From positions 207,948,001-208,012,000 of the forward strand of contig NC_091288.1 in the NCBI RefSeq assembly GCF_032444005.1: a stretch of DNA of 64,000 nt, in the 5' to 3' direction. The position numbers and the translations under genes were made by a program. The notes under the pieces are model-generated. The model was not told the origin of the DNA. It worked only from the letters and a program-made list of their open reading frames with translations, and did no database searches. Within the stretch, counting starts at the first letter, position 1. Each line of letters opens with the position of its first letter. Below, piece after piece: positions 31,813 through 63,387 of this stretch. The stretch comes from Ranitomeya imitator. Taxonomy: Eukaryota.

Positions 31813-31916
31813 TCACAGAAATAAGTTATTTATGTAAAATATGGCTACTAATGTGCAAGCATTCAAGAGGTAGATAACGCTGAATGATGATGATGATGCT
31901 CCAGAAGTGGGGGTTA
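31813..31916 (-). other. Last coding exon encoding a GPI-anchor-type signal
   Basis: Translates as (V)TPTSGASSSSFSVIYLLNACTLVAIFYINNLFL*: small residues (S-G-A), a polar spacer, then a hydrophobic tail running to the stop. A strong polypyrimidine acceptor precedes it. Confidence 0.8.
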
Positions 31917-34900
31917 CTGTAAAAGAAAAAAAAAGGAAGGTGGTTAGGTGAATGCATGATTCGGGATTCCGCTGGATTCCTGTTACTTGAAAGCAGTGCA
32001 ATCCCAAAACTAAACCCCCATTGCCTATTCACAGAATTGATCATAGGTCTTTGATTATCTGGGCTCCTGCCACTGAGACCCTCACTGATCTCGAGAACAG
32101 GGATCCTGTTTGCCAGACGGGATGAAGCCGTAGTGCGTTTCATTCAAAGTCTATGAGACTGATGAAGAAATGGTTACGCTGTTCTTGGTTGTTTCGACCT
32201 GTCCCATAGACTTTGACTGGAGCTGTGCTGTACGTGACCAGTAGCTTTTGGTAGCATAATATCAAGATTTCTCAGATTGATTGCTACAGATTCACCGGAT
32301 AACATCCATATTATTTACACATTGACGAGTAGTATATCTGAAGTGACCAGTCTGTCGGATCACCTACGTATTCAATTCATTGTTATATTGGCAATGCGGT
32401 GAAGGTAGAGAATAGGCAAGGAGACTTGGCACACTACTGCTTATCTCTTACATATAATCAAATTTGGTGAAGGTTAATCTAGGTGGAGAACCCCTCTAAA
32501 GAATGTAGTTACCATAAGACAAATTTTAAGGGAAGAGTGACATCAAACGACTTCAAAAGATGTCTCTGTTGGGTTTCAGTGACCATTTCCAACCATAGTT
32601 GAAACCCTCTGTAATCCTTCATCTTTTGACTATGAGGCCGTCAGATAATTAAAGAAGCACTCCCAGTTTTCCCCCCTTCTATAACCACACCCTCAACTGA
32701 TGGTTAATTAGATTGTACGCTTATTTTATATACAGTTTACTTATTTCCATGCAAATCAAACTTTTGTTTTTTTTTCCTTCAAAGAGGTTGTCCCACGAAC
32801 AAACTACATTTTAATGAATAGATCTTGGAATAATAAGTTACACAATTGGATATGTAAAAATGTTCCTGTTCTGAGATAATTATATAACTGTGCCCCTGCT
32901 TTGTAGTTTTTTATTTGCGGAGTCTGACCTTGTAGAGCTGCTCCAGCTCATGATTAGCACATACCACAGCTCCTGGGCCCGGGGGATGAAACATAGATCA
33001 ATTATGATAAGAGAGTATACAGATGCAACAGCAAGGAGTCGCTGCTTTCCAAGGTAACTAATTTTCCTGGCTGTTTTATCACAGGAGCGAGTGTTTGCTA
33101 CGGTGTCTACAGGTCTGTGAGTTCATCATTAATCAAGTCAGTGGTGTAGGTTCGTCCTACGACATCTGAGCGCCTATGTCATTCACTATGAGGAACTCAG
33201 AAGGCTGGAGATATGACAGAAACACTCGCTCCTGTGATAAAACAGGCAGGGAAATGTGTTATCTCAGAAAGCAGCAGCTTCAAGCCCCTGCTGTTTCATG
33301 TTACTTATCATAAATGACTAATGCTTCCTCACCTGGCCGGGAGCTGTGGCAAGTGCCAACCATAAACTGGAGCAGATTGTACAGATAAAATAAGACAGTA
33401 CATAAAAGGTGCACATTTATAAAATTATCTCAGCACAGGAACTTTTTTTTAGCTCATCCGATCGTGGAACTTATTATTATTCCAAGATCTATTAATTAAA
33501 ATGTACTTTGTAAGTGGGGCAACTTCTTTAAGCCTTGATATCTCCCATTCAAAAAAATACTAATTTTTTTTAAAGTGAAACGTCCCTTTAGGCTTGGAAA
33601 GTGGAAATTTCTGTTGTTGTCTATGCTATTTTTTGGCTCACATATTCTTAATGTTATGAGAAAAGCCAAGGATGAAAACACGTTACCTTCTTTATACCAT
33701 AGTTATGAGATGTTGAAGACAGAATGTACCCCCTAACCTGCTGTCACTCCTAAAGAGTGGTGGGCACCATTATACACTGATGAAATATCCGTGAAGGGAA
33801 ACCCACCAAGACATCCTTCCTTTCAGTATTTTTGTTAATGGATTTTCTATGCGTTAACACCAATCCCAATACTAAAGAGATGCAAAACGGTAGACTTTGC
33901 AGAAGAGCTGTTTATGTCTTCCTACAAACACGTTCTTATATTTCCATGTATACTTGTAGTGTAGATATGGAGTGTAATAAAAGAATCATCTTGTTACCTA
34001 GGCTAATGATTATGAAATCGTCAGGCATTGTCTCGTTGACTCCTCCCTTTACGCCAAGTCCCAGTTTGTTGATCTCTGTCTGTGTGTTTACCGACACCCA
34101 GGCTTGGAGTACGGAGCTGTTGGTTATCGTGTCGATGTCGGAGATGCTATTTCCAAGGAGAGCCTTAATATTTTCAGCACTCAATTTCTATTCGACAATG
34201 ATAAGTAAAACATGTATGAAAAAGTCAGATTAAACACTTATTTTTTCGTAATATATCCTGTTAATAATAAAAAAAAACATAGGTTAGTCACCACCATAAG
34301 AGTTTTTGCTTTGAACAGGCCATGGGCTGTGAGAATATGCTCGTAAGGGACTGAGATGCAATACCATGACAAAGCCAGTAGAGAACGAGACGCTGTTCCA
34401 GAAAATAAAAAAAAACATTTGTAGTGCAATGGTTATGCCTGGGATTGTGATAATTCAGCTGTAGGGGACCAGAAGGGAAATGTTTGGGGAGAAAAAATGG
34501 GAACCCTGTGTTTCAAATCTATTTAAAGTAAAAGCTCCGAATGTAATGAAGTAACATTTTGGTAAAATTAACGTCAATCTCTCAAAATGTAAATGTGAGC
34601 TATAGAAGACTGGAATAAAATGGATTAAAACTGAGTTGTCATCAGAAGGATGATGAGGAGACAGGTGTCCAAGATTGCGGTTTATCGGTCAACGTGTTTC
34701 GAAGTATCAAATTTATTAAAGGGAACCTGTCACCCCGAAAATCCGGGGTGAGGTAAGCCCACCGGCATCAGGGGCTTATCTACAGCATTCTGTAATGCTG
34801 TAGATAAGCCCCCGATGTAACCTGAAAAGGGAGAAAAAGACGTTAGATTATACTCACCCAGGGGCGGTCCTGCTGCTGGTCAGGTCGGATGGGCGTCTCC

Positions 34901-37900
34901 GGTCCGCTGCGGCACCTCCTATCTTCATTACAAGACGTCCTCTTCTGATCTTCAGCCACGGCTCCGGCGCAGGCGTACTTTGCTCTGCCCTGTTGAGGGC
35001 AGACAAAGTACTGCAGTGCGCAAGCGCCGGGCCTCTGACCTTTCCGGCGCCTGCGCACTGCAGTACTATCCTCTGCCCTCAAGAGGGCAGAGCAAAGTAC
35101 GCCTGCGCCGGAGCCGTGGCTGAAGATCAGAAGAGGACGTCATGGAAAGAAGATAGGAGGCGCCGCAGCGGACCGGAGACGCCCATCCGACCTGACCAGC
35201 AGCAGGACCGCCCCTGGGTGAGTATAATATAACGTCTTTTTCTCCCTTTTCAGGTTACATCGGGGGCTTATCTACAGCATTACAGAATGCTGTAGATAAG
35301 CCCCTGATGCCGGTGGGCTTACCTCACCCCGGATTTTCGGGGTGACAGGTTCCCTTTAATTAGGACAAACCACAGTGATTTTCCTGGGGTTTGTCCTGAT
35401 GAAGAAGTTTGATATTTCGAAATGCCTTGACTCTAAAATGAAAATGTGAATATTTCATTGTATAATGAAAGTTCTGAAATTCTGTAATATGCTCATTGCC
35501 GACATCAGAGGAGCAGCACCGGTCCTGGAATGTTATTTATTTCTTTTTTAATCTTATGTCAGGCATTTAAGAAGGGGTTGTCCAGTAGTGGGCTATCCCT
35601 TTAAAGGTTCCTATAACTTTAGTGACCTATAATGATGGACAGAGTCAATCATCAGGGGAAAAGTGACCAGGAAGTGACAGAAGGGGGACACAGGAACTCA
35701 AACAAGATTCCTCGAGGACAGACAGACATGAGCGCTGAATACTGCAATATGTAACTATTATGTATTTTTCGTGTAACTACTACAAAATGGAGACCACAAA
35801 TAATTTTAGAAGAAATCATCACGAGTCTGCCTGTTATAGCCAGAGAAAAAATTCTGGATTAATAATACAGTTTAACCCTTTCTCGACATCACCATGTATT
35901 TATTTTGCTGTTTAGAATTACTTCTCAAAATTTTCTGTACCGGTGTGGAGCTGTGAGGATGCAGGCTTAAATGGTTACACCCTGTTGTCACTTTATTAAC
36001 ACACAAATAATAGAGGAACAACACCATTCCAAGAGATAAAAAATTCTGATTTTTAAGAAAGTGGGAAATACAATTGGGCAGCACGGTGGCTCAGTGGTTA
36101 GCACAGCAGCCTTGCAGCGCTGGAGTCCTGGGTTCAAATCCCACCAAGGACAACATCTGCAAGGAGTTTGTATGTTCTCCCCATGTTTGTGTGAGTTTCC
36201 TCCAGGTTCTCTGGTTTCCTCCCACATTCCAAATACATACTGATAGGGAATTTAGATTGTGAGCCCCATCGGGGACAGCGATGATAATGTGTGCAAACTG
36301 TAAAGCGCTGCGTAATATGTTCACGCTATATAAATAAAAATATTCTTCTTATTATTATTACAATTATTATTACTAAAGCAAACATGTCAGGAGCGAGGGT
36401 CTATTTTATGGTTCATAGTTTATTTTAAGAGTCCGAAAAGGAGGAATCAGAAAGGGGAGAGAGAAGTAGGTCACAACACTAGTTTTGATAAGTCTTTTGA
36501 ATTACACCGTCCCACAATTACAGCTTTTCATCTGCTGTATCTACAGGATGGGTGATAAGTTGCTGATTGCAGGGGGTCTCATAAATTACAAGAACAGGGT
36601 CTTCCATTTAAATGATGAGACACTGCTGCTGCCCAATTCATCGTCAATGGGACTGACGATTATAGCATCTAATAAGTTAATACTTGTGATAAGAGAATAG
36701 TTGATACGTTGTCATTTTAGGTCAACCCATTAATTAATATACATTTAAATTCAACATTAATATATTTTGTTCCTAAATAATTAGGTTTTTGAGGCAAAAA
36801 ATACCTAAGTAATCTGGAGTACTGGTATCTAACTAAGAATGTTCCTATTTCCTACAACCATCAGATATCTTGAAAATGTTGAGAATTTCGGTGATGTTAC
36901 TCGTTTCTCTGGAAATTAATATACTTTTTTTATGAACATGAGTTCTTTATGTGGAATGGTTTTTCTATACTGTGTTGGGCTAGGGACAGATATTCTTAAT
37001 TTTATACATTTTTACCTTAACTTCAGACGGATTCAATGATGTAAATGTAGTAAGATCCATTTCTGGGTTACTTTTTGCAAAAAGGAGCAGATCCTCATAT
37101 TTTGAGCCTCCTGCAGGAGAAATAGTTACGTAAACATTTTAAGTATCAAGTTGGGGAAAAAATTTGAAACAAATAACAATAAGATTGTAAAGTACCCCAC
37201 TCCCAAAAGACCAGCAACCACCACAACAGCTGCCTTATGCAGTTTCTTCGACATTGACAAAACATTTGCAAAGTTCCACAACGTAATCTCTTACCTATCA
37301 CCGTCGTCATCATTTCGTAATAAGCGTTGGAAGAGTCGTCAGAGGTTGAGTAAGCTGACTTCATCTTGCTGTAGAGAAGATCCTTCTGGCCCTGAGTACA
37401 AGTTGATGTATCCAGAGGTTGGCTAGAATTTCTAAAATGAAAAGAAATAATTTTGCATGCATCAATTTCCACATTAAAGGGAACCTGACATTTGATACCT
37501 GCTGCCCAAGCCACAGGCAGCATGCATCAGGCTTTGGCTGCATGATTTCAGCCAGATATGTTCGACTCCAAAATGCAGCGACATTTCAGAAAAAAACACA
37601 CATCAAAAACCGTCTGGGACCGAGCCGCATGGCAGAGTAGTCAGACAGGCGGGTCCCTGGCGGCTTTTCGCCTCTGGCTCCTGTTGTGCGACGGGTCTCT
37701 CCCTGTGTGCATGTACAGGGAGAGACCTGTCACTCCAGAGCAGTGGGCGGGGAGAAGCCATTGGAGATCCGCCTTTTCGACTAGTCTACTGTGCAGCTCG
37801 GTCCCCGGCCAGCTATTAAAGTTCATTTTACGTATGTTTTTAAGTTTTTCCACAGTTAAACATACCTGGCTGAAATCATTAAAACCTACAAGAGAAAAAA

Positions 37901-40900
37901 AAGTAAATGAAAACCCTGATATAACTAAGTAAAAAAAGCAAAAATGCATTTAAATAACACAGAGTTTTTAGTAATACTGTTTTTTGATAAAAAAAATAGC
38001 ACAAAAGCCATCCCACCTCGTCACGGTAACTCTGATCGGGACAGTCCGATTTTTGCTTTTTTTACTTAGTTATATCAGGGTTTTCATTTACTTTTTTTTT
38101 CTCTTGTAGGTTTTAATGTTTTGTGGCCATTTTGAACATGCGTTTTACCTCTGCATGTATACCAACTTAAGTTAAGCTCAATTTTGTGTTTTTTTTTTCT
38201 GGCTGAAATCATGCAGCTACTGCCTCCTAATATTGGACTCTCTAAGAAATTATTTATCGTACATTAATTCCACTAAAAAGTTAATCACACATGATACTTA
38301 CTTAAGTTCATTATCAAGAATTTTTTGAATTGTGGTTTCGTTTAACCCGCAGATATAAGGGGCCAAGACAGTGAGTGCAGTCCCATCCAAAGTCGCAGTC
38401 GAAGAACTTAGATATTGTGTCACCAAGGCATCAATCTGTTAATAATATAGCCAAATAATTAGAAGATTGCAACAATATGCTGGTAGTCTATGGGGTGTGT
38501 ATGTGTTTATACATGTATACATATATACTGTTCTATGTACATCCAGTAGACAGAAATGTCTTTAAAAAGGTAACTAATTTTAGTCATCAGTGTCTTAAGT
38601 GGAAAGGCTCGGCAGTTTTTAGTGTGGGGGAGAGGGACACAATGGCTTTGTTATTTGGTTTAGCTGTGCCTTTCTTTATTGACCCATGAAAAACAAGCTC
38701 AAAGCAATTTCTCATCTCAAAATTTTACAGTAGGCCTAGGGCTGTCAGGGGGTAACGTTCTCCTGGTATTCATCAAACCCAGACTCCTCCATCAGACGAA
38801 GATAGAGAAGTGTGATCCGTCACTCCTCCAGAGCCCAGAGGTGGCGGCTTTACACCACTTCCTCCAACACTCGGCATTGGGAATTGTCATGTACGGCAGC
38901 ATTCAGCTGCCCAACCATGAAAAAAAATGTGTTACCAATACTAAACATCTGCACATCCTCTTAAAATTTTGACATCTTATTAGAGATTGGTGATCTTTTT
39001 AGAACGAGCTGCTCTGTCACACATGTTAATAAAGGTAGATGGCATGGAGAAGGGTTGGTGGATAAACATCAGCTACAATGGGACTAAATAAAAAAAAAAC
39101 CTGAATTAAATTATTATGAGGCACATCCCAATACTTTTCACCATATAATAAATGCTTGAAAAATGACGTTAATATGCCCCAGGAGTCTTACCTTCGAGTC
39201 ATTGGTTTGCCAAGATGCACCTTCTAGAATATCTGCTAAAGTGTCCACTGTTGTTATGTTCCACATACTTATTTCGTCTGTGCTGTACATCCTGGCAATG
39301 TTCCCTATCTGGATGAGATACTCATTTGGTATAGTAGTTGGGAAGATCTTTGAGGGGTAAAAAAAAGCATGAAATGAAATCAACTGATGTCAGTGATAAA
39401 TGTTTCATAAATGGCCACCACTCGAATGTACTAAAGACTGTATACATTTCTTTGCACACTGGGGTTTGCAGGCCACCAAAATTTTAGAAGCAGTGCGATT
39501 GGAACACTTTATCAAGCTTATTGGCTCTTGGAGGTCTATCTGTGTTAAATAATTTCTGCTAAAAAGAAAAGATATATAATGACACCTTACCGTATCCAGT
39601 TTATTTTTGAGTACTTGGAGCTGGTTATTTTCAAAGGCCAGGCTTCCAAGGATCTCCAGGTTATCTTTTAAGGTTATGTTACTGAGACAGGCATCCAGCT
39701 GTCCGGCCGTGTAGCTGATAACAATATATTCATTCTGCTTGGCAATCAAATCTGTAGTAAGCTCTTCACATTCAGCTGTGTAGAGAAACAGGGAAATATG
39801 AGAAGCGTTATACATGGACATATGTGGACCATCAAATCTGCCGCTTTGACAGGTTCTATATTAGATGACCTCTTGAACTATTTGTACACCTTAATAATGT
39901 TAGGCTGGGTTCAAAATGCGTCTGTGGCGTCCATTAGAAGGACTACGTTACACCGCGGCATAACGCGGTGTAACGCAGTCCGTTAATGCCGCCATTATGT
40001 CCTATGTCGGACGCATCGCTAGCGCATGCCCACAATGGGCATTGAGTGACGGACCCAGAACGTGGGCTGCAGCGTTTCAGGGTCCATCACTGCTAGCGCA
40101 GATAGAGCTAGCAGATGCTCTATCTGCGCTAGCGATGTGACCAGTCGGCACTTGCGTTAACAGCAGCCCTTTAACGTATGTGTTGAACGGGCTGCTGTTA
40201 ACGCAGTGTGAACCTACTGGGGCTTCACAATTGTCCCAGGAAGGTGCTGTTCAGGAGGCTAAGATTTTGCATATGCATAGTTGATCTACCAGAATCCTAT
40301 TTATTTCTTGCGCTACCAACACAGAGCAACTGGCAGCTTTTTGTATAAGTTTGTGTGCAAAAGGTCCTTTTAGTCAAATATCATATGAAATGTATTCTTT
40401 AAAACGTACGTGCTGCTCGAGTGGCGATTCTTGCTGAGACCTTCAGTTGACTTATCACAAGAAGGAAGACAGTCTTATAATAAGTTTTCATTGTTGTCAG
40501 GAATCCGGGAAAGAACTGCCGCTTTACAGCCTGCAATGTAAAAATAGTTTTCAGTGTGCTCTTTAGATTATTGTTGATATGGTGTAGTATTTGAAGTATG
40601 TATTACCGTGTTGATCAATTTAAGGGTGGTACCATCAATAGCGCTGGAGAGACGTCCAATCTGTCCCATGGTCGAGACTGTCCAGAGAGAAGGATCCCTG
40701 GAGAAAAGAAGCACACTTTGTGAGATAACAAACTAGAGCTTTCCAGTCGTCAGCTTCAATCAGTAACATAAACTGGCGGATACCTTTCCCTGTATAGGGA
40801 TTAGAGGAATGCAACATTATGGACCCCAGTCACAGATATGAGTGTATTCTGAAATTTTGGAATATAGAGTGACACAAATATCTCCAAGCAATAAATCTGA

Positions 40901-43900
40901 GGAACATGATCGTCAGAAGAACCTTCATTCCTTAAATCGATGAAAGTCCCGTCTCACAGAATCCCACCAATGAAAATTCATTGATAGGGTTTCACATACA
41001 TACCCATATGTGGCCTTCAACTTCAGTAAAATAGCTGACTTCTGGGAGTCCGTGAAAGACGTGCAGGATTTAAGAGCTTGTAATATGTAGGGATCTGAAT
41101 TTTTAATTTCATTGTCCGACAGGTCACAGGCAAGGCTTCCCAACTTCTGTAGGGTCTCCTTAGTAATAACGCTTGCACTGCTTATGTTCTGTATTAGACA
41201 GAAAAACAGACATTACACAGCATTATTCATTTATAGCATGGTTAATTGTCCCTTTGTAGAAACCACAGTCCCTCCATGCCTTACCAGACAGGTTCTTGCA
41301 CTGCTCATTAGAGATACTCTTCTTGCAGATCCCTGGGCCAGCAGATCTATATTAGCCTTTCCTACACTGGTGAAATAATTCTCACATTCTGATGGTTTGG
41401 TATAGGGTCTAAAAAAGGAAATAAACATTGGGTTAATCTTAGGTTTTTAATGTGTTCTTATACATGAAGCGTTATATTTAAGCAATTTTGAGCATGGATG
41501 CCGAATCCTGTGGGTACACAACGTTGACTTCCTAATCTTCACCCCATCCAGTGGCGAAGTCTCATTTTGTAGAACCCTGTTCCTGTCACGATCTAGAGGT
41601 TTGATAAACTTTCAAGTACTCCTCCAATACATAATGTTTGTGAACTGGCCCAGAAAAAAAATGCCCAGAAAATAAAAAAATATCCCCTTTTACGCTTTAC
41701 GCTCTATGCTGTAAATCAAAAAGTGTTTACCCCAAGAATAGAAGAACATCACTGGAATAGCTGCTGAAATCTGCCGTTGCTCCGCTCGTTGTGAGTCTAT
41801 TGGCCAAGCAGCTTAGCTGGAAGAAAAAAAAAAACATAGCAGAGAGTTTTATGAGGCCATCTTGGCTGCATTGTGTGCATACCTTTGTCTGGAATTTCTT
41901 ACCTGACTACTTTCTAAGTTCACTGATTTGCCATTCAAAGACTTAATAAGATTGACAAACTGATTATTGTTTAGTTTATTGGCAGCTCCACATGTGAAAC
42001 CTTGCAGGATATTAGAAGATAATCTAAAAGAGAAATGTAATGCAATACAATTAAAACTGTTTTTATAACCTCTCTTCTGAAGTTATCCTATCATGCTATG
42101 ATAGAAGGGCGTGATTTTGTTTTTCCGTTTTGTAATGGAGTAGAATAGTATTACCCTCCCAGCAAAGACGTACGGAATATCTGCTGACCAAAACTGATGG
42201 AATAGGGTTCAAATTGGTGCGAAGGGATCAGTACATTTTTTATAGTTTTCTAATGTATTAGAAGTGTTAAAGGGTTGTCTTACAAAATGCTTTCTTAACC
42301 CCTTAATGACCGCCAGTACGTCTTTTAACTGACCTGAGATATAAGAGACTATCATCCCCATATAGGTGGCAATCCAGCAGCTGTCGGCTGTCCACTATAG
42401 CTGACAACTTGCTGCATCAGCCACGATCAGTGTTTGCACTGTCCAACTCTGTTTAGCCCCTTAGATGCTGCTGTCAATAGTGACTACATCATATAAATGG
42501 TTAACAGCGTGTGGGGGCTTCCTCTGTATCCCAATGGGCGCCCTCAGATCATGATTGTGTGGTCCTGATGTTTGCGGTGGCAATTCATGACCAAACAGCG
42601 GCCTTAGAGTCTGACGGCTGTAGTAATCTGTTCAGAAGTCAGCGGCATTTAGGTGGTAAAAATACACATTTTCATTTCTGTCATACCACTTTGCATTAAT
42701 TCCTGTAAAGCACCTGAAGGGTTAATAAACTACCCGACAACAGTTTTCAGTATGTCAGGAGGTGCTGTTTTTAAGATGGTATAACTTTTGGGGGTTTCCC
42801 AATATATGGGACCCCTAAAGGCACTTCAAACATGGATAGGTTCCTAAAAAAAATAAATTTTGTAAATTTCCTTGAAAAAATTAAAAATTACTGCTACATT
42901 TTTAAACCTTCTAAAATGCTAACAAAATAAAAGAACATTTTACAAATGGTGCTGATGTAAAGCCGACATGTGGGAAATGTTATTTATAAATGTTTTTGTG
43001 TGTTATAACTGTCTGGATTAAAGGGATAATCATTCAAAGTTTGAAAATTGCTAATTTTTTTACATTTTTCTCAAATTTCTAATATTTTTTATAGACACAA
43101 AACATATCGACCTAAATTTACCATTAGGGAACAATTTGAAAAACATTTTCTGTTGAGTTAGGTTTTTGAGCTGATTTATACTAAAATTGGCATGCTGATT
43201 CCAAAAATGTAGTCAGTTTTTTTCTAGCACGTCAAGTTTTTCCTACACAACTTACCTGACAGAGAAGCACAATTGCACTGATATCTGTAATAAGACTTGT
43301 TATCTGATTACAATTCGACTCATATAGAGCTACGTGGCAACTTGTAAGAGTAGTCACAACTTTGTCATGCCTATTTCTTATATATTTCATTTTTTGTTCA
43401 TATTTGTACTATTTAAAAAAACAACAACACTTTTTAGGTACAGTAGTTTACATAGTTTTGAGAAGACAAAAATCCTACAGTTCAAAAACTTGACGTGATA
43501 GAGAAAAACTGAGATCATTTCTGGATTCAGCATCCAAAAATTAATTAAGAACAGTTGTCTCGCCTAACTCTTAAAAAATTGTGTTCCCCATTATCATAAA
43601 GTATAACGTGTCACGAAAAAACAATCTCAAAATCACTGGGATTTGTTGAAGCGTTGCAGAGTTATTACCACATAAAGTAACACTGGTCAGATTTAAAAAA
43701 TGTGGCTCCGTCACGTTAATGTAAGTTAGGCCTACAAATATATTGCCAAACACAGCCTATAAAATGGCAACCAGAGGATATCACCTCGGCAAGTGCTGTC
43801 TGGGCTGCGACATAGGAAATCTTATACAAATGTAATAGAGCGACCAGGACCAAGAAGCAGGAGCTTCTTATAGTTTACATATTCTCATATACCGTAGATT

Positions 43901-52900: not shown

Positions 52901-55900
52901 TCGGCCTACATTCTAAGCTGTAAAGACATTACTGTACAAAAAAAAGTATATTCTTACAGCTTTTCATAAAAGTTGCAGTTGGCATTGATAACTCCGGGGA
53001 CGTTTAGCTGCTCCAATGTTATCAGTTTTATAGAGTTGTTGAATCGAACACTGAACCATATATCCGTATCAGAGTTATTGAGAAGGTTAGAATTTGACAC
53101 AAAAATTGGCCACACGGTCTCGAAGACAGCAAGATTGATATCATCCTACAAAACAAATAAAGCATAAGAAACAATTATTCTGTGGGTATTTAAAGAATTA
53201 TTAAGCAAAGTAGAAAATCCTCTTTTGGTGCAGGATTGCATAACACTCTCAGCTCCTCATGGCAAAAGATGGACAATCTATTGTTTCCATGCCTTGGTAG
53301 AATATTACAAAGGCCTGACCTTTAGTCTGCACCCTCTTATTTGCCATTATCATGAATGTTTTCAAGTGTAGAGATTCCTATGGTAGAAAAATTAGCAGAC
53401 ACTCTCTATGCTAGATGTATTGTTGGTCTATGAAACCTCCAAATCTCCCAAATCCAGCAAGGAAAAAAGTATTGAGATGTAACCTGAACATATTTAACTT
53501 CTTATCCCTTAGTTCCCGACATCTGTTTTGGTCACAAGACCTTTTACAACATCACAAAAATGTTTCTTTAAACAATATTTGTAAGTTTTCCCCAATTTGT
53601 TCCATATAAATTACATAATGCAAAGTCAGGTAGCTTGTAAGAGATGCGACTATTAATGCTAACTTTTCAGAAGTTCGGTTATAAATTGGAGTCATAAACC
53701 AAATCATGATGCTTCCTCTAATAATAGCCTTCATCAGATTTGGGTTCTTTTTGCAAATTTCTCCCGAGTTTGCATTCTTACCGTTTTAATATTGAGCCGG
53801 TCTATGACTTCTCCCAACTTGCTAATGTCTGTGTAATGCGAAAGAATTATTGACCATAGAGTACTATTTGTGTTAGTGTCAGGCTGCAGATAGAAGACCA
53901 AGTCCTGTGGCTTCAATGAGTTCAGTTTCTGGAAATAGAAATGACAGAACAGCTGTTAAACGCGAAGGTAGGGACTCTGAAATTGGTTGCCTATATCAGC
54001 AATGGTTTGTTTGGAAGTTTTTGGCTTTTAGCGTTAGTCATAGTGCGTCCACATTTAGCGAGGCAGTAGATAAGGAAATGTAGAGGACCTCATAGCATAA
54101 TAAAATGCTATGCCAACCCATGGTTACCTGTTAGGTCCATCACTCTGGCCCAGGTCATCCCTGTGCTGTATCTGTCTTCAGTTTTAGGAACAAAAATTAA
54201 TTGTCTACACCTTTTAACATACTTACTGTGAGGAGCTGCTCATTTTGAAGAAGAGACACTAAGTCCTCAGGGTTTAAGAGAGCTGAGGATGCCTCAAAAT
54301 ACTGGTCAATGAATAGCTGAAGGTCATCAAATTTGTCACATTCCAAGGCAGATCCTATTAGGGGAATGTAAACATGAAGGAGTTATTGATATTTAGGAGA
54401 CTGTTGCTCTTGTATCAATCATTCATTTTTAATACCAGGTTTATTACAGATTTTTTTTTTAGATTTTGTACATAGAGCAAAAAAAGCAACATGTCTTAAA
54501 CACTTATATTAGATATATAAAGTTAATGAACATACTTTTATGGTAATCCAACAAGTACTGATACACTGCTTTCTGTATATTCGACACCAACAGGCCAAAG
54601 GAGGAATTGATGGCTGCGATTCTGAGTGAAAGAACATAAGATGACACATTGTTGGTTTCAGAGAATTAGTTTAGTGTTTCCTGTGACTGATTTGCCCTTG
54701 TTACATTAAGCCCTGTCCTCACCAATATAGTCATATGACTTTGTAGGTCACTGCCTACTAAAAGATCAACATACTCTTCTGCTGCTGTCAACATTTAGGA
54801 AAACTCGAAGAAATCCAGCTCCAGGAAATAGAAATAGTCCTTTGTTTAAAATTGCGAAACAGCTTTATTCAAAAGTAACATGGTAAAAAATTTGAACTCA
54901 ACAAACAAGTGGCAGAGGAGAGGATCACATCTCAGCACTTCACTGTACACGTTTCGAACACTGTTGTGTCCATACTGAAGACTAAGAACACAACAGTGTT
55001 CGAAACGCGTTCAGTTTGTCGAGTTCACATTTTTTACCATGTTAATTTTTTAATAAAGCTGTTTCGAATTTTAAACAAAGGACTATTTCTATTTCCTGGA
55101 GCTGGATTTCTTCGAGTTTTCCTGTATCTACCACGTCACTGGCTGGACGTTTATCCTTGCTCGGATGTCTCCAATATACTTGGATCGTGTTGGATGAGCT
55201 GAAATATTTTTCTTTTGTACATAGTGCTGTCAACATTTACATTATTTGATCGGGACTTTCCTAACTGAACTTTATGAATGAAGACTTATGCTACTACAAC
55301 TATTTTCATTAACTCATTAGTTATTTTACAGATTTGTGCTGTATGGTCTACATTCGGATTGCAATACTGCTGGATCTCTTGACCGGAATGTAGTGCTTGA
55401 CAATTCGTACAGATTAGGAGATTCTCCTGTTGATCTAGTCATTGCAATCTGAACACGGACCGTATTTCATGGTTGTGTGATGCTGTCATTAGTCGCATAG
55501 TATATTTTCCCATCACACACATTATAAAAAAAAACCAAAGCCCAATACTTAGTAAAATAAAGCCATAAGTGCGTAAGCCACTACCTCCCAAGAGATCAAC
55601 ACATTTCTCTTCTGCTTCTATCATCGTTTCCACAACTACTAACCGGAGGCTCTACATATAGACAAATTAAGCAGGACCAATGAAAATATAATGATCAGCA
55701 TTTCATTGCTGTAAAATCATCTATTATATTTGCAACTTACATTCCCTGGGCAGTTTCACAGCTAATGTCTTTAGGGAACTGAGAGATGGTTGGCTCTGTG
55801 ATTTCCAGCGAAAACATATTGGCCATTATTTGGAAATTATCCAGCCATTGTTGTTCGATGCTGGAACTCCAGAATTTCTGAAGAACATCCCACACAGCTG

Positions 55901-58900
55901 AGAAAATGGCAGATTTTGTGCCGTTCTGAAGAACCGCTGAATTTGCACACAAAGATGTGCCAGATGATGGCGAAGAGTTCTGCTTAGGGAGTAAAAAAAA
56001 AAGTTTTGTTTTTCAATCTACCCTATAATTAGTATGTATACCCTATAGTGTAAGGTAATACTTACCGCACACACATAGCTTTGCAGTTGGGCAATGTATT
56101 CATTTAACTCTGTCAGTGACTTCAATTGCTTGATATTGGTTATTACGATTCCATTTAGAGTTATGTTTTGGATGGCGTCCGCTGTTATCGTTATATCAGC
56201 AAGGTTGGTGGGTGTGATGGTTGCACTAAATTCCAGCTGGAAGGAGGGATATCAATCAGTAAATGTGGAAAAAATTATGGTGTATAGGATGCAGCGGACC
56301 ATAATACAGTCCAAATTTCGGTTGCGTCAGCATATACAGCATGCTAAACCCAATCATTGCTATTATTGTGGCTCTGTTCCTCCTAACTCTTAGGTAGAAC
56401 AATTACATTTGCTGTTTATTTGCTCTCGGTGTGGATAGGCTTTCTATGCCTGAAGATACCCAGGACACCTTTTCTTTGCTAAAATCATTTTTTTTTCAAT
56501 AGAAAATTGTTTGTTCTGTATATTGAAAATATCATACCTGAAAAAGGAATATTTTTGACATCATAGATAAATATTCAGATCAATAGGTTACATTTCCATT
56601 GGCTGCAGTCATAGATTTTACCAGCTAGACAGACTCAGCAAAACCATTGTGAGGACCCTATCAAACAGTTTAAATGTCCAGAACATAAAAATGAATATTG
56701 AGAGTCGGGGCCCAATGTTAGACCCTGTTAAAGCTAACTTCGGTCACTTCTGAATTTATATTTTTTAGTGGAGTTTAATGGGGTTATCATCTATCCACGG
56801 GAAAGGTGAACACCTATTGATTGGCAGGGTCCGACCATGGGAACCTAAACTGATCAGCAGAACGAGGACTTTATATCCTTGTTAGGGCACTTTTTCCTCT
56901 GTTATAGCAAGGGGTGGCAGGTCGGATGCCCAATCGCTGTTTCTATATGCGCTAACAGAAAAAAAATGAGTGCAGCGATTGACTGCTCCATAGAGATTGA
57001 ATGGAACAGCGGTCAAGCATGCACACTGCTGCGCCATTCCATAACGGGGATAAAAGTACCTGTCTTGCAGATGGGTGCGGGTCCCATTGGTGAGACACCG
57101 ACCAGCCTATAATTATCACCAATCCCGTGTAACGATTACATATTTTATTATATGACCGTCCTCACCTTTGTAAGATTTGCATTGAAAATACTTAGGTCCT
57201 CATAACTTGCTTCTATAACAAACTTTCCAAAGTTGAGCGCAAGCCAAGTTCCTTGATTCACAGTATCACAAGCCACACCTGCAAAAAAAATAAGTTTTAG
57301 AAATGGTTCGAAAAAGTTAATGCTTGAAATATTCAAGCTCTAACAATGCCTCCTCGGGACACGACGTATCAGTACACAATTCTTCCTAAATGCTAAATTG
57401 TAATAACATGCAATTTTATTGAAGTACAAGATTGTCTGAGTTGTGCGGTGGTACAGATTGTACAATGTAAATAATATTTTCTAGTCTCGTAGCTGCGATT
57501 CTAAAAGTCTCATTTAAAGATCTTAATTTTTCAGGCTTTCTCATGAGTACCGTGAGTCTACCTGGCGTCCCATCCCCAACGATCTGTTATTCATGACCTA
57601 TCCTAAAGATAGGCCATCGTTATTAAAACACCTGACAACCCCTGAAAACACTTGAGCATAGAAGCAACATAGCGTGCAGTGTACATTTACCTGTAGGGAA
57701 GGACTGATGACCCATAAAGTTCTTAATAAAAGAATTATAAATGTCCATTTTAGTCTCGTTTGTCAGGGCTGTGAAAACTAAGCTGAATCCTTTAACTCTG
57801 TGTTAAAAAGAAAAAAACATAATTACAAATATGTAAATTTATGTGAAATAATATAACAAAAATAAATAATACCATAGTACAATCAGAGTATTGCTACTTT
57901 TTAGGACACTTTATTTTTAGATTTAATCTTTTCAATCAATTCTTTAACACTCCTTATCCTGCTGGTATCTTTATGGTACTCACATGGCTTGGAAGGAAGA
58001 GCAGGGAATGCTTATAGGTAGCATTTGAAGAGTTGTTTGGTTAAAATATGGAATCAAGATGGCCAATTGCACCTCAAACAAAACTGTCCATTGTTGAGGG
58101 CTGTAGGAAGAAAAGTTGGACTGAAGTTGCTGAAGCTGCGTTGTCAGAAGAGTTCTGCGTATGGTTGCCACTTGATCCATAGTTAGATTTGCCTTTTTAG
58201 GGACACAAATATTTTTTACAAAGTTTTGTTAAATGAGCCAAAATTTGGAATATGAAAACTTGGTTTCATTGCTTTAAACCAAATGCCCGTCGGCACATAC
58301 CTTTTCTGATGAAGATACCAATGCATTTACAAAAACGGTAACATTTTCCAGGTTTATCTTTCTTAGATATGAAATAAGCAGTGTTTCGTTAGCCAGAACC
58401 TCAGGGCCGGTTACTGAGATAGCCATGGAGGCCAAAAATACAGCACCCTACAATAAATACATTGTGTTCATAATCCATGACATATAGCGTATTCTCTGTC
58501 ACATAGTTATGGAATATGTCCGGAATATTGATCATTCTCTTATTAGTTGTTTTTAAACCCCTATTAAATTTAATTTATTCTTAAAAGTATCGTCCACTTT
58601 CTTTTAACAAATGTATTGGGGACAGGATCGTTTTGTGCGTACTGATGTTCTTCTGCACTTGTTGGTGTAGCCTTTATCATACTGCACAAAGCTTCTGCTT
58701 CCAAATGGCCACATATGGAGGGGCATGTGAGAAGACCTGTCCCTCCGCCACTGCCAATTAGAAAACACTACGCATACGAAAGTTATTACCCAATTGGAGG
58801 AGGCTAAAGGACTGCCCTTATCGTTTGCTTTTTCATTAACTAGAATTTAAAAAACATGAGCCCTGAACACCCTAAGAGAAAAGCTGGACTAGAAAGTGCA

Positions 58901-61900
58901 GTAGTGAAACCTATCAACTTTATACAGTTTATTAATAAGTGCCTCAAAATCATGTTGTCAACCTGTTTGTGTTGACGTTGTATGTTGAATTAGACCAGTC
59001 CGTTGCCTCTATCATTAAACAAAGCCATTGTCTGTAGCTTCAACTAACATTGCATATTATAGATGCCATACCAAAGGAAAGTCTGAGCCAAAAGGATTTA
59101 TCTGCTGATTAGCAACAAACGTTCTAAATGGTGTTTCTGTATTTTTAATAAATGCATCTCGGCACGGATATTGTGAAACAATCGCATATTAGTACAATAG
59201 CATGTAATATATGTTTAATATATGTAATATAATAATATGTTCTCAGAAATGCACAGTCTCATTGAAAGAGTTACATGGTCCATTTACAGCAAATTTTTTT
59301 CACTTTTTCTCCAAAGTCCATCTTAAATTTCCATTTTCAACTATATCTCTAAAGTGAAATGTATCTATCTTTCCATGTATATGATCTTTATATGGAGGAT
59401 TTGTCATCTGAGATCCCAGGTCTATTTTTTGACTATTACATTGAAAAGTACTAAAAAGAATAAAAAGAAACATAGATATGATATCTATCTATTCATCTAT
59501 CCATCTATCTATCTATCTATCTCTCTATCCATCTATCCATTCATCTATCCATCTATCTATCGTCATAGAAAATATTTTTTTTTAAATCTTTGAAGTCACT
59601 CATACCCACCCTCTCTCCCATTTTCTTCTCATTTGCCGTAATGAAACAAGAGCTGGCAATCTAGATGACACTCTTGGAATAGACTACTACATGTAGGAGA
59701 TTGATCCAGCCACTGTATACTTGAGAGAATTCTGTGCAGAGTTTTGAGGAATCAGACTCAGTGTTTTTAGTATTTTTTTATCTGGGATATTGCTGTATGT
59801 GTAGCAGCTACATGCCTCCCCTTCTATTGTTTTTCAGTCCTATCTTTTATTTGGAAATTTAGCCACATTTGAAGAGCCCTGGTATAACCAGTAATCCAAG
59901 GACACCCTTATTGCCCTCTGTGCGCAGAGATAGACTAACTCCATGGGCAAAGCGAGGCACCAAATGATTGCTGAACTGTTGCAAGGCGCTGCAGAACCAG
60001 GCTGTCACCAGAGCCCTGATGACGGAGAGGACTGCCCAGGTGCTTATGGTGCTGCGCAGAGGTCCAACCGGTGAATGTCAGCCATGCTCGTAACCAGAGT
60101 ATTGTGGACCCCCTACTGCCGATGGCCTTAAAGCAACTCGATGCAGACGATCGCAAGGGAAGTCTGAACATGATTCAGCAACACTGACAGGCCCCAGCTG
60201 AGTGGGAGCGGGAAGAGAGGCATTACCAGCTGGAGTTAGCCCAAATCCAGCCTCAGAGATCTTCCCCATCCGGCAGTGAGTCCAGCAATGCCAACTGCTT
60301 TAAACCCTGTCCCGAGCATGTTCCTGTGATGGACAAGGATGGGGACTTGGACATATTTGCCTGCATGCAGTACCAGCTGCCTCAAGAACAGGGTGCCCGA
60401 TATTTAACTCCGTGGCTACAAGGAAAAGCTTTGGAGGTGTTTGCTTCTCTCCCTCGAAACCAAGATAGAGACTGAGGCCATCAAGTGGTCACAATAGCCT
60501 CGTTTGTCTGGAGAGGCAAAAGATGAACCCCACACCTGAAGCCCCGGACCTAGTGCAGACATTCTTTTTGTGGGTGGGGCAGATGGGAGAGCCCGTGAGA
60601 ATTTGCAACCGCTTACTGTGGGCCACACCATTGCTGTTGGACTTAAGGACACTGGTACAGAACGTTTTCTCATCCACCCTGACTTTGTGTTACCGGAGGA
60701 ACACATTCCTGGGAAGACCCTTACTGTAACCGGTTTTGGGGGTGTTCGCCATCTGTTACCAATGGCCCTTGGAATTTCTATGCATCCGGTATTAATGAAA
60801 CATATATTTTTCGCACTGGGGCTAACAAAGGAAAAATATACATGTTTTCTCATAAATATAATCCCCGCCCAAAGGCCCCAAAGCCATAGAGGCCATATAA
60901 CTGGGAACCGCTATGCCATGTTTAGTCTCTCAGTAAACATACAATCCCAATAAAAAATGAGACGTCAGTTTCAAAGTTCTGTGGTTGTCCGGTAAGGAGT
61001 TATCGCATAAGTTGGGATTTCATAAAATCATGAAGGGATGAGACCAGCACACAAACCGGCCCATGTGAGGTCGTCATGGGGGTTGTGTGGGTGGCACTCA
61101 GGGTCTGATAAGAGATCCAGCTGAATTATGATCTGGGTTCGTGTACATATTATGTCTGCAGAGACCTCGTTTACTCAACGGTAAATCGAGGTGCTCTTCT
61201 TTGGCTAAACTGAATTGTCTCTGCGATCAGCGTAGTAAATTCTCTTTTTAATCCCTTTTATTTTCTGTAACTGTATATGCTGTGTTGTTTTGTCCCACTT
61301 GTAAAACCTTTTCTATATTTTTCAGAAACACTGCCTCCCTTTGGATTAAATATAAAATTTAATAGTTCTGTTCCTTTTGTTCTGTAAACACACCTTGAAG
61401 CCATATGCTACCTTAAATGGCGTTCAATCGGCCGAAAACGGATTGGTGGTGGCAACGAGTAGTCTGGGATTAGTGTGAAGTTAGCGGTGACAGTACTGGG
61501 GTATATACACATATTCCATATGTTGGGATCTGTAGGTGTATATGCCATACGCTCAATGTTAGTTTTACAATAACCGGCCTAGTAGTGCGAACAGCTTGTG
61601 GTCTCCTCCGTTGATCGTCGGCCAATCATGTAATTGTCTGGACGATAGGGGGTAGCAGAGAGCTGTTCACTCCAAAGATCACAGCGGGTGGTACTCGTGA
61701 CCTTCCCGACCTGTGATATTGTGAATTTGTGCGATTAAGAACTTCCTGACACACATATATACTGTATACAATATAAAGTCCAGAAACTATGGGCATTCAC
61801 TTACCTCTGTAAAAGTTTTGTTGTAAAAGATTGATTCCTCTGCTGTACAATATTTAAAAAAATAAGCAAAATTATTCTGAATCCAGATATCGTAGTCAAC

Positions 61901-63342
61901 AGCGCCACAAGCGAAATCTGTAGATGAACAAAAGGGACAATCTTGCCTCGTCAAAAGATTATAAAAATATGGCATCAAATCAGGAGAAATACTTAGTAGC
62001 GTATGTATATTTTGTAGTATGATTATCATATGTTGATCCTTACCTGCCGAAGTTGCTTGTTGAGTCATATATCTTTGAATGAAGTAATTGTAGATATCTC
62101 TACCGGTGTCATCGCTCAGCGCAGAAGAATCAAGACTAAATCCTTTTACTCTGTGTCAAGAAATAAAGATGAAAATTATGTATCAGGATTTCATCATAAT
62201 ATTGTTGTTTTGAAAGTTTTCTTTTTTTTTTGTTTTAAAAGACGATAGGTTTCTATTTCTCCATATACACTTGGTACTTACATGGCTTGATAGGAACTGC
62301 AGGAAATGTTTGTCGGCAGGAGCTCAAGTAAGGTTGCGTTGAAATATTGGATCAAAAGTGTTAAGCGGATCTGAAACAAAACCTGCCATTGCTCTGTGGT
62401 ATAACTAGAGAAGCTGGACTGAAGTTGCTGAAGCTCCACAGCCAGGAGAGTTTGTTTTACTTTGTCTACCAGCTCCAGAGACAGATTTGCCTATGAAAAT
62501 AAAAAAAGTTTTCAGTAAAACAAGTCCAACCTAACCGGCACTCTACTATTAGTCTTTGGTGTGACTGTTAAATTATTCTCAAACTGAAAATGTTGTGATC
62601 ATCTTGAATTTCATAAACCTCGGTTTAATCATCACAATCGCTTACCTTTCCTGCTGCGGTTGTCAGAGCAGTCAAGAAGACGGTGACATTGTCTAATTGC
62701 ACCTTACTTAAATATGAAATGAGCAAGGTTTCATTCTGAAGAACATCTGTCTTGGTCACAAGGTCAACCACAACATTTGGTGTGAGAGCATTCTGGAAAA
62801 AGCACAGTTTTGATTAAAAAAAATCAGCCCTGGCATTCTTAAAAACTAAGTTTCCACATAACCGATCATATACATAAAAATATCAATATATTTCTCTCTG
62901 AAGACACAGTTCAACATGGTACTTTATGACGAACTACTGAAGAGCTGAAGCATTCTTTGAGCCATTAAATTCTTTAAAAATAACTGTGCATCTTTTAACT
63001 TATGGTGTTGTATTTGTTTCCTGCATACAACAATATCGAACGTGAGGTAAATTTACCCAAATTCAGTTAAAACTTAGCAAAAATGCCAATAACCTCTAAT
63101 TCAAGATTTTCTTGCCCTTTAGATATTGGCACCTACTGCAGTAAGTGTATAAACTGGAAACGCGAAAGTAACCACTTGAATAAAGGCTATAACCTTAGTC
63201 CTTGTTAATCTATTTGGATATCCACCTACCTGGGTAAGGTTTTTATTGTAAATTATCAATTCCTCTGTGGTGGCGTACTTGAAAAAATAGTCAAAATTAA
63301 TCTGAATCCAGGTTTCGTAGTCTACAGCGCCACAAGCAATAT
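31813..63342 (-). CDS. Giant mesothelin-family (MSLNL-like) protein with a predicted GPI anchor and tandem N-terminal four-exon repeats; 5'-partial, 36 exons, ~1660 aa in window
   Basis: Exons on the minus strand: 63342-63230, 62792-62646, 62490-62282, 62150-62044, 61917-61805, 58447-58301, 58192-57984, 57797-57691, 57278-57166, 56236-56066, 55982-55741, 54621-54536, 54354-54227, 53928-53782, 53145-52958, 51009-50921, 48913-48798, 48050-47926, 47642-47510, 47383-47171, 47083-46916, 44469-44335, 44242-44193, 42023-41903, 41816-41731, 41408-41285, 41188-41004, 40697-40607, 40530-40410, 39775-39591, 39347-39192, 38435-38302, 37431-37295, 37110-37016, 34187-33998, 31916-31813. Total 4985 nt with no internal stop and compatible phases. 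Motifs LQGFTC, QLSCLANRL, DVLLFL, KANIDLL, LGSLACDL, DPSLWTVSTM, QLQVLKNKLD, WNITTVDTL, LDTSTC, MDLTTF and LGLGVKGG parallel human MSLN (LLGFPC, QLRCLAHRL, DLLLFL, KANVDLL, LGGLACDL, PSTWSVSTM, QLDVLKHKLD, WNVTSLETL, DLDTC, MDLATF, LGLGLQGG). Position and orientation relative to CIAO3 match MSLNL. The symbol is left blank because MSLN versus MSLNL orthology cannot be settled here. Confidence 0.9.
34720..35355. mobile_element. Young, nearly perfect palindromic MITE with TTAA target duplication
   Basis: TTAA|AGGGAACCTGTCACCCCGAAAATCCGGGGTGAGG ... CCTCACCCCGGATTTTCGGGGTGACAGGTTCCCT|TTAA (TTAA at 34716-34719 and 35356-35359). The two ~315-bp arms are almost exact reverse complements. Confidence 0.92.
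36076..36360 (+). mobile_element. tRNA-derived SINE with (TTA)n tail
   Basis: GGGCAGCACGGTGGCTCAGTGGTTAGCAC (A box) and GGTTCAAATCC (B box), ending TGTAAAGCGCTGCG...AATAAA...TTATTATTA. Confidence 0.88.
39900..40216. mobile_element. MITE with internal palindromes
   Basis: TAGGCTGGGTTCA...GTGTGAACCTA ends; internal hairpins GCTAGCGCAGATAGAGC..GCTCTATCTGCGCTAGC and GCGTTAACAGCAGCCC..GGGCTGCTGTTAACGC. Confidence 0.65.
42296..43720. mobile_element. piggyBac-like non-autonomous element fragments
   Basis: TTAACCCCTTAATGACC left end; internal segments homologous to 29790-30350. Confidence 0.6.
44625..45150 (+). mobile_element. L2 LINE 3' end with (AAT)n tail
   Basis: ORF 44633-44860 ends LWNPLPQLIRLSPTIETFKKNLKTHLFRQAYNLQ*. 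The 3' UTR contains a duplicated segment and an AATAATAAT tail. Confidence 0.88.
48975..50170 (+). mobile_element. CR1 LINE 3' part (RT C-terminus), interrupted by a SINE tail at ~49130-49210
   Basis: VDIVYLDFSKAFDKV near 48985; VRPHLEYCVEFWA..KKDIEKLEKVQRRATRMVSGL...YEERL (49657-50094); 3' end ATTCTCTGATTCTAT. Confidence 0.9.
51740..52575 (+). mobile_element. L2 LINE 3' end
   Basis: Reads SCRLQLKNISRIRSFL..AKTLVHALIIS.L.YCNLLLCGLP, then LHWLPI and WNPLPQHIRLSPTIETFKKNLKTHLF, with an (AAT)n tail. Highly similar to 44625-45150. Confidence 0.9.
54798..55224. mobile_element. Penelope-like inverted-repeat insertion with a 15-bp flanking direct repeat
   Basis: TGCTGTCAACATTTA at 54783-54797 and 55225-55239. 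Inverted arms at about 54800-54870 and 55051-55120. Central TTCGAAACGCGTT motif. Confidence 0.6.
59476..59562. repeat. (TATC/CATC)n microsatellite
   Basis: Seen directly: ATCTATCTATTCATCTATCCATCTATCTATCT... Confidence 0.9.
59900..61750 (+). mobile_element. Degenerate Gypsy LTR retrotransposon (Gmr1-like gag/SCAN-like/protease remnant plus probable LTR)
   Basis: QYQLPQEQGARYLTPWLQGKALEVF near 60380; TVGHTIAVGLKDTGT...PGKTLTVTGFGG..LPMA (ORF 60570-60953, DTG protease motif). Stops and frameshifts are present. An LTR-like non-coding segment lies at about 60960-61750. Confidence 0.7.
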
Positions 63343-63387
63343 CTGTGGATGAAAAATGTGAAAAATCATGATTTTTCAAAAGTTTAT

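Follow-up and report, generated by a model that had tools for sequence, protein, structure and literature searches.

A mesothelin-family gene with a tandem four-exon module in Ranitomeya imitator, and its module-bearing relatives in other vertebrates

We study here a stretch of 64,000 nucleotides (nt) from the frog Ranitomeya imitator (assembly GCF_032444005.1, contig NC_091288.1, positions 207,948,001 to 208,012,000 of the forward strand), which as a whole we call the window, and in it a gene of the mesothelin family that lies on the minus strand. The window's DNA is that of a vertebrate, it contains no runs of N, and its stop-free minus-strand segments show clear internal repeats. The gene encodes, in order along the protein, an array of four full copies and one partial copy of a four-exon module, a pre-region of 250 residues, and a Mesothelin domain. 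We consider it likely that the window holds the 3' ~31.5 kilobases (kb) of the R. imitator orthologue of MSLNL (mesothelin-like protein, MPF-like); RefSeq names the gene 'otoancorin-like'. What is already known is the gene itself, which is annotated in RefSeq and is an ordinary member of a widespread, uncharacterized group; what is new is how the module is defined and where it occurs, the recognition of a conserved tail, and the placement of the gene with MSLNL.

Gene structure and the four-exon module

A search with a profile of the second exon of the module (exon B, below) retrieves the RefSeq protein XP_069591747.1 (P0114; "otoancorin-like", Ranitomeya imitator, 1579 residues). We place its exons on the window by peptide anchors, followed by a boundary search limited to AG/GT sites. 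The resulting chain of 34 exons, 62490..31816 on the minus strand, reproduces residues 7–1579 of that protein with 0 mismatches. Two further exons at the 5' end (63342–63230 and 62792–62646) extend the chain to 36 exons and 4979 nt, which translate without a stop into 1659 residues; introns are GT-AG in 35 of 35 cases, and a TGA stop stands at 31813–31815. The RefSeq model itself starts at 62605, a position deduced from its gene span of 30790 nt, and its first exon holds six residues (MITTFS), has a weak donor and is not a signal peptide. All exons are listed in Table 1.

These results reproduce the core of an earlier, sequence-only reading of this DNA by a model, which had proposed a 36-exon open frame of ~1660 residues, the last ~590 of them homologous to mesothelin and preceded by ~1070 extra residues; we find 592 (exons 44242..31816) and 1067. 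The same reading saw a single mesothelin-family gene with an N-terminal four-exon array before a part that aligns with human MSLN, both of which we recover, together with a hydrophobic C-terminal tail of the glycosylphosphatidylinositol (GPI) type as judged by eye, and it expected automatic annotation to have listed the locus already, as RefSeq has, though only under the name 'otoancorin-like'.

The unit of the array consists of exons A, B, C and D of 147, 209, 107 and 113 nt, or 576 nt and 192 residues, with A starting and D ending in phase 0. Modules M1 (62792–61805) and M2 (58447–57166) keep these exon lengths, while M3 (56236–54227, 208 residues) and M4 (53928–48798, 180 residues) have diverged from them; a single D exon from one more copy, D0, lies at the edge of the window, which therefore holds at least 4.3 modules. 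The four or more repeats of ~185–205 residues claimed from the sequence alone thus correspond to four full copies of 180–208 residues and this lone exon. A hidden Markov model (HMM) of the full module recovers four copies in the R. imitator protein. Since M1 and M2 share only 49% of their residues and their introns do not align, the copies in the window are old and diverged, the 5'-most pair being the youngest. The tandem amplification proposed earlier is therefore real as an array, but it is not recent.

The module consensus, found in tandem arrays, combines a conserved tryptophan, an N-F-G-x-F motif and two cysteines, the latter conserved in 94% and 93% of 209 copies. Neither single exons, whole modules nor the pre-region match any Pfam family, and the Mesothelin domain is the only one found, in line with the earlier remark that the repeat has no named domain. 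We considered, and dropped, the idea that the module arose as a copy of the mesothelin domain that could still be recognised: an hhalign comparison of the 209-copy module profile with a 34-sequence profile of the tail gives E 0.15 and a probability of 0.4.

Structure prediction, which the sequence-only reading had suggested, gives a confident answer. An AlphaFold model of two modules, built from a 55-sequence alignment, is all helix, with a predicted local distance difference test score (pLDDT) of 90 and a predicted template modelling score (pTM) of 0.81; a second model, which runs from the last module through the pre-region into the first part of the Mesothelin domain, shows continuous helices at pLDDT 87. 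The structural neighbours are generic alpha-solenoids only (designed armadillo proteins, PP2A-A, CAND1). A Foldseek search of the PDB with the module model yields template modelling (TM) scores of at most 0.36, VIA-align Z scores reach at most 9.2, which is below the level meaningful for helical repeats, and no mesothelin chain is among the fold matches listed. Searches of reviewed proteins give weak fold matches, namely with N-terminal or middle regions of stereocilin and otoancorin (E 2e-3 to 2e-2, TM 0.2–0.35). The matching AlphaFold DB clusters contain uncharacterized entries only, by accession apparently fish and frog proteins, and one look-alike entry is named SEA-domain-containing. As modelled, then, the module is predicted to be an all-helical solenoid that lacks a Pfam family. 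Both models agree with the superhelical, ARM/HEAT-like fold of the mesothelin superfamily.

Behind M4 follow the ~250 residues of the pre-region, encoded by exons 18–21, and then the Mesothelin domain. Exon 20 of the pre-region is 39% identical over 71 residues to exon 27 of the Mesothelin domain. The Pfam Mesothelin profile (PF06060) matches residues 984–1534 of XP_069591747.1 at profile positions 40–586 of 624, with 271 bits against a gathering cut-off of 25.8 bits (E 2.4e-80); residue 984 falls on the border of exons 22 and 23. The human mesothelin structure 7UED, chain M, aligns with tail residues 531–816 at E 5.4e-31. The protein closes with a run of small residues and a hydrophobic end of ~23 residues, a candidate signal of the GPI type as judged by eye, without a predictor. 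The whole tail (pre-region, Mesothelin domain and hydrophobic end) comprises ~850 residues, and its length is conserved across species.

The composition of the protein is acidic, with a predicted isoelectric point (pI) of 4.66 over the 1659 residues. It carries 34 N-x-S/T sequons, compared with 24.3 +/- 4.3 in shuffled sequences. This is a modest enrichment, and the description 'heavily glycosylated' in the sequence-only reading is not supported. A mucin stretch rich in Ser, Thr and Pro is absent; a single 50-residue window exceeds 40% S+T+P.

Table 1. Exons of the MSLNL-like gene and minisatellite arrays in the window (positions in the window; "exact" stands for exact to XP_069591747.1)
Feature	Positions	Strand	Evidence or remark
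Exon 1, D exon of module M0 (D0), 113 nt	63230..63342	-	frame open at 5' end
Exon 2, A exon of module M1 (A1), 147 nt	62646..62792	-	good splice sites, length as A2
RefSeq short first exon (MITTFS), 21 nt, in A1-B1 intron	62585..62605	-	RefSeq model
Exon 3, B1, 209 nt	62282..62490	-	exact; joint 62150/62282 in 4 runs
Exon 4, C1, 107 nt	62044..62150	-	exact; RNA joints both sides
Exon 5, D1, 113 nt	61805..61917	-	exact; joints 61917/62044, 58447/61805 seen
Exon 6, A2, 147 nt	58301..58447	-	exact; RNA joints seen
Exon 7, B2, 209 nt	57984..58192	-	exact; joint 58192/58301 in 4 runs
Exon 8, C2, 107 nt	57691..57797	-	exact
Exon 9, D2, 113 nt	57166..57278	-	exact
Exon 10, A3, 171 nt	56066..56236	-	exact
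Exon 11, B3, 239 nt	55741..55979	-	exact
Exon 12, C3, 86 nt	54536..54621	-	exact
Exon 13, D3, 128 nt	54227..54354	-	exact
Exon 14, A4, 147 nt	53782..53928	-	exact
Exon 15, B4, 188 nt	52958..53145	-	exact
Exon 16, C4, 89 nt	50921..51009	-	exact
Exon 17, D4, 116 nt, end of last module	48798..48913	-	exact
Exon 18, start of 250-residue pre-region	47926..48050	-	exact
Exon 19, pre-region	47510..47642	-	exact
Exon 20, pre-region	47171..47383	-	exact
Exon 21, pre-region	46916..47083	-	exact
Exon 22, Pfam Mesothelin match starts at 3' end	44335..44469	-	exact
Exon 23, Mesothelin domain	44193..44242	-	exact; Pfam match
Exon 24, Mesothelin domain	41903..42023	-	exact
Exon 25, Mesothelin domain	41731..41816	-	exact
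Exon 26, Mesothelin domain	41285..41408	-	exact
Exon 27, Mesothelin domain	41004..41188	-	exact
Exon 28, Mesothelin domain	40607..40697	-	exact
Exon 29, Mesothelin domain	40410..40530	-	exact
Exon 30, Mesothelin domain; match to mature human mesothelin starts	39591..39775	-	exact
Exon 31, Mesothelin domain	39192..39347	-	exact
Exon 32, Mesothelin domain	38302..38435	-	exact
Exon 33, Mesothelin domain	37295..37431	-	exact
Exon 34, Mesothelin domain	37016..37110	-	exact
Exon 35, Mesothelin domain	33998..34187	-	exact
Exon 36, small residues, hydrophobic C-terminal tail, TGA	31813..31916	-	exact
Minisatellite arrays	3201-4509, 7890-8490, 10009-11633, 13782-14451, 19565-20225, 21228-21556, 27315-28221

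Module arrays in other vertebrates

Searched against 1.84 billion protein representatives, the exon-B profile finds at least 113 cluster representatives at E <=0.001; a single protein of 7139 residues has as many as 31 matching stretches. In the 133 proteins that we fetched, the full-module HMM counts 897 copies. The carriers are frogs, a salamander, a caecilian, turtles, lungfish, Polypterus, teleosts (including the mslnb of a loach) and sharks, and the largest relative is a shark protein of 7881 residues. The 'giant' surface protein of the sequence-only reading is therefore real but not unusual, given that longer relatives are already public. In the literature that we searched on mesothelin-family genes, including those of zebrafish, Xenopus and other fish and frogs, we find neither the giant forms nor the module described.

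The module occurs in two architectures. In the first, that of the R. imitator gene, an array of modules is followed by the tail, which measures 800–900 residues in 34 proteins and ~845 in the giants that we checked. These giants include Pelobates CAH2307403.1 (5238 residues), Bombina XP_053550177.1 (4419), Eretmochelys CAM5142697.1 (4061), Stegostoma XP_059510198.1 (7881) and the mslnb of Misgurnus (4254). They differ from the frog gene in the array itself: they have 11–31 modules, often arranged as near-identical super-repeats of two modules (195+213 residues), whereas the copies in the window are old and diverged. In the second architecture, proteins of ~2400–2480 residues (from Ascaphus, Ambystoma, Protopterus, Thunnus and others) consist of a signal peptide and 12 modules. 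They share the module, the signal peptide and the type of head with the first architecture but, unlike the frog gene, have no pre-region, Mesothelin domain or hydrophobic C-terminus, and so are presumably secreted. The tail-less family is represented in our set by P0010, P0024, P0025, P0027, P0029–P0031, P0037 and P0039, from lungfish, tuna, axolotl and frogs; each has exactly 12 modules, all are annotated as uncharacterized, and by accession order their genes adjoin the giant genes.

Complete models of both architectures open with a signal peptide and a related, cysteine-containing head of ~70–100 residues. Most other models, both Ranitomeya ones included, start partway through a module and are evidently incomplete at the 5' end. 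Because the signal peptide and head of the complete relatives do not occur in the window, the R. imitator gene appears to continue 5' of it. The head of one complete giant, that of Discoglossus (P0006, residues 83–153), weakly resembles the window at 44475–44205 (tblastn E 0.11), that is, the first Mesothelin exons. This likeness may hint at an ancestral mesothelin-like protein in which the array arose, either by insertion or by growth from within.

The modules of an array do not all share the same history. For the frog protein's last module, the best match in the proteins of nine other species is likewise the last module, and for its penultimate module it is the penultimate one in four, while the distal modules of some species form near-identical super-repeats. 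The array thus has a membrane-proximal part that is conserved and a distal part amplified by lineage: the two modules next to the tail are positionally orthologous across tetrapods, and the distal ones have been amplified separately in each lineage, to between 4 and at least 31 copies. That range also bears out the earlier suggestion that cassette copy number sets the length of the protein.

Probable assignment to MSLNL

In a tree of the tails, with fish otoa as a distant branch and eutherian MSLN and MSLNL left out, the R. imitator gene falls into one clade with the MSLNL of anurans, salamander, caecilian, turtle and marsupials, supported at 100% in the Shimodaira–Hasegawa-like approximate likelihood ratio test (SH-aLRT). 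Outside this clade lie the amphibian 'mesothelin' proteins, fish mslnb and the shark giants, all of which carry modules, as well as OTOA; the amphibian 'mesothelin' proteins form a separate clade, yet bear the module. The identities of the R. imitator tail follow the same order: 39–42% to marsupial and turtle MSLNL over almost their whole length, 34% to amphibian 'mesothelin', and 22% to Labrus otoa.

The neighbourhood may add to this. Directly downstream, at 17000–25000 of the minus strand, lies a gene like the Fe-only hydrogenases (CIAO3/NARFL), with an exon at 18979–19299 that matches Pfam Fe_hyd_lg_C at E 1.9e-10. Beyond it, a minus-strand exon at 5465–5740 encodes a glyoxalase II (hydroxyacylglutathione hydrolase, HAGH-like; match to PDB 1QH3 at E 4e-15). 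In human, MSLN and MSLNL lie in the neighbourhood of CIAO3 and HAGH. From clade and identities, and probably from the neighbourhood as well, we conclude that the RefSeq product name is misleading and that the gene appears to be an orthologue of MSLNL, rather than of MSLN or of otoancorin. The tree thereby refines the earlier placement, which had stopped at the mesothelin family and had itself called for such an analysis.

Among mammals, marsupial MSLNL models are ~820 residues long, and the tail HMM covers them from ~84–96 to 815–842, the pre-region before the Pfam domain included. They have no signal peptide, and their first residues fall in the closing part of a module (module HMM, independent E-value 0.0015–0.008), so that where the frog has at least 4.3 modules in the window they keep a remnant of the last one only. 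The N-termini of P0157 and P0159–P0162 (MRKYLL...) align with the end encoded by the module's C and D exons, and in Petaurus MSLNL additional residues correspond to the A/B part. At least one module remnant thus seems to survive in marsupials. The earlier proposal that mammals shortened or lost the long form agrees with the length of these models and their remnant, but the models may themselves be incomplete.

Human MSLN, at 620–630 residues, has in common with the frog protein the Mesothelin domain, a helical, superhelical fold and, as a candidate feature in the frog, a C-terminus of the GPI type; unlike the frog protein, it has neither pre-region nor modules. Its dibasic furin site is not evident, by eye, at the aligned frog position. 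Stereocilin and otoancorin belong to the same superfamily and likewise place a long, helical N-terminal extension before a mesothelin-like C-terminal part. They are distant from the frog protein (22% to fish otoa), their fold matches to the module are at the level of generic solenoids, and we see no evidence that their N-terminal regions are built from the module.

The remaining repeats in the window are of other kinds. Seven minisatellite arrays (Table 1), with periods of 26–86 nt and 8–57 copies, occupy its gene-poor first half and yield long spurious open reading frames on both strands. One interspersed element stands in two different introns of the gene, at 52138–52472 and 44680–45051, with a translated identity of 66–95% over short stretches.

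Expression, the 5' end and possible function

Spliced contigs from four probable RNA runs match four introns to the base (62151–62281, 61918–62043, 58448–61804 and 58193–58300), which confirms the junctions B1-C1, C1-D1, D1-A2 and A2-B2. Over 43900–49899, the border of module and mesothelin parts, the share of sampled words in four probable RNA runs of one study, one of which is among the runs with spliced contigs, is 0.17–0.18, for an exon fraction of 0.16. The contigs are few and shallow, and so are informative on presence, not on absence. Two side observations concern the same data. At 63388–63999, in intron or upstream sequence of the MSLNL-like gene, RNA-like contigs of higher depth carry 4–5% mismatches; their source is probably a repeat with copies elsewhere, rather than this locus. 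At 62491–62540, in the intron directly 5' of B1, the contig of one run has a 10-nt insertion relative to the window, an indel between alleles that comes from unspliced RNA or from DNA.

The background for a function comes from relatives. The mesothelin family has been proposed to consist of superhelical lectins that join cell surfaces to extracellular glycoproteins, and stereocilin and otoancorin are reported to be GPI-linked and to tether acellular gels to sensory epithelia (PMC2628672). These two proteins play that part in the ear. In the mouse, Mslnl ranks with the membrane-protein genes that olfactory receptor neurons express most highly and specifically, and according to the paper that reports this, there is no functional study of MSLNL in any tissue (PMC4295871). 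Since mouse Mslnl is found in olfactory neurons and the family includes tethers of this kind, our preferred reading, by analogy, is that an MSLNL-like protein would be a tether at a sensory epithelium. The protein would be secreted, N-glycosylated and GPI-anchored on the outer membrane leaflet; its modules would stack into a stiff, disulfide-stabilised alpha-solenoid rod that holds the distal end off the apical membrane; the number of modules would set the reach of the rod; and the whole may link an apical, possibly ciliated sensory surface to its mucus or gel layer.

In its full form, to which we give a tentative probability of about one in three, our reading is as follows. The module would be an undescribed extracellular alpha-solenoid that dates to the ancestor of jawed vertebrates. 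Its arrays, of 4 to at least 31 copies, would form the length-setting shaft of GPI-anchored tethers of the MSLNL/MSLN type and likewise of the 12-module paralogue, which would be secreted. In mammals MSLNL, and perhaps MSLN too, would be the stump that remained once the array had been lost. The strong, unexplained expression of Mslnl in olfactory neurons would then hint at a tether of cilia or mucus, with module number tuning its reach in fishes, amphibians and turtles.

Several observations weigh against the gene model and the tether reading. The olfactory link comes from the mouse only, and we infer the GPI anchor, the glycosylation, the geometry of the rod and the tether function. When the signal peptides and heads of eight complete relatives are compared with the window, no match is better than E 0.1; with no signal peptide seen in the window, secretion of the R. 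imitator protein stays putative. Moreover, exons D0 and A1 have no contig in the four probable RNA runs, one contig passes unspliced from B1 into the upstream intron, and the annotation calls no gene within 10 kb upstream of the RefSeq model. The splice chain, for which the sequence-only reading had asked for RNA, is thus borne out at four junctions, but D0 and A1 lack such evidence.

These last observations are what one would expect if the R. imitator gene were 5'-truncated, starting at ~62605 in the A1-B1 intron, with D0, A1 and everything upstream as unexpressed relics. The product would then have no signal peptide, and the locus would be decaying or put to a different, non-secreted use. 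Consistent with this, the runs that span B1 to B2 show nothing on A1 or D0, the word share over 58000–63999 is half of the exon fraction, the RefSeq gene begins at 62605 with no called gene in the next 10 kb, and the models of hyloid frogs are all short and without signal peptides. The two exons themselves, however, do not look like relics. D0, although outside the RefSeq model, has AG/GTAGGT sites and the length of D1 and D2, and both exons keep intact frames, canonical sites and exact module lengths. D0 and D1 are 77% identical at the nucleotide level, with proportions of synonymous and non-synonymous differences pS 0.64 and pN 0.14, which gives a ratio of non-synonymous to synonymous divergence (dN/dS) of 0.11; for A1 and A2 dN/dS is 0.31, and in both comparisons synonymous sites are near saturation. 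A1 shares 64% identity with the start of P0142, the Engystomops orthologue, a model that opens with an A1-like exon spliced to a B exon, and D0 and A1 together align over the D-to-A junction of other frogs' annotated proteins. A first exon of six residues with a weak donor makes a poor start for the gene, contigs so few and shallow say little about absence, and a Mesothelin-domain protein with a GPI-type end but no signal peptide is biologically implausible. We therefore hold truncation to be improbable and, on these comparisons, regard D0 and A1 as coding exons of the MSLNL-like gene that look selected.

Two other readings accept the long protein but take it for something else. The RefSeq name implies an orthologue of otoancorin (or stereocilin); some relatives are indeed labelled 'Otoancorin' in UniRef, and the module model weakly fold-matches the N-terminal parts of both proteins. 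Yet the tail is far closer to MSLNL than to fish otoa, OTOA stands outside the fully supported clade that unites the gene with MSLNL, and the neighbours CIAO3 and HAGH-like would fit the human MSLN/MSLNL arrangement, so that we give this orthology very little credence. The protein could instead be a heavily glycosylated scaffold of the skin or mucosal glycocalyx, rather than a tether of sensory epithelia. Its excess of sequons, its acidic pI combined with a GPI-type tail, the large, mucin-like shifts in copy number between lineages, and the look-alike named for a SEA domain would all suit such a role. Conversely, the protein lacks a mucin-type S/T/P stretch, its modules are modelled as folded helical domains, and the sole expression report for the orthologous gene concerns mouse olfactory neurons. 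A glycocalyx scaffold is thus unlikely, though less so than truncation, and we prefer the tether.

Mesothelin is a major target of cancer therapy whose normal function is unclear, and its family is where the tether reading would matter. The non-mammalian orthologues of MSLNL would be giant modular rods, of up to ~7900 residues in the fetched models, of which the marsupial models represent the membrane-proximal tail with a module remnant. With the module, the analysis further describes a family not yet in Pfam, and it indicates that most public models of module-array genes are 5'-truncated inside the repeat array, which concerns genome annotation. The proposal is testable in Xenopus or zebrafish, by locating the sites of production and by comparing module number with the thickness or attachment of the extracellular layer. 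In evolutionary terms, the short form of mammals would descend from an ancestral protein that was a long tether, as stereocilin and otoancorin are.

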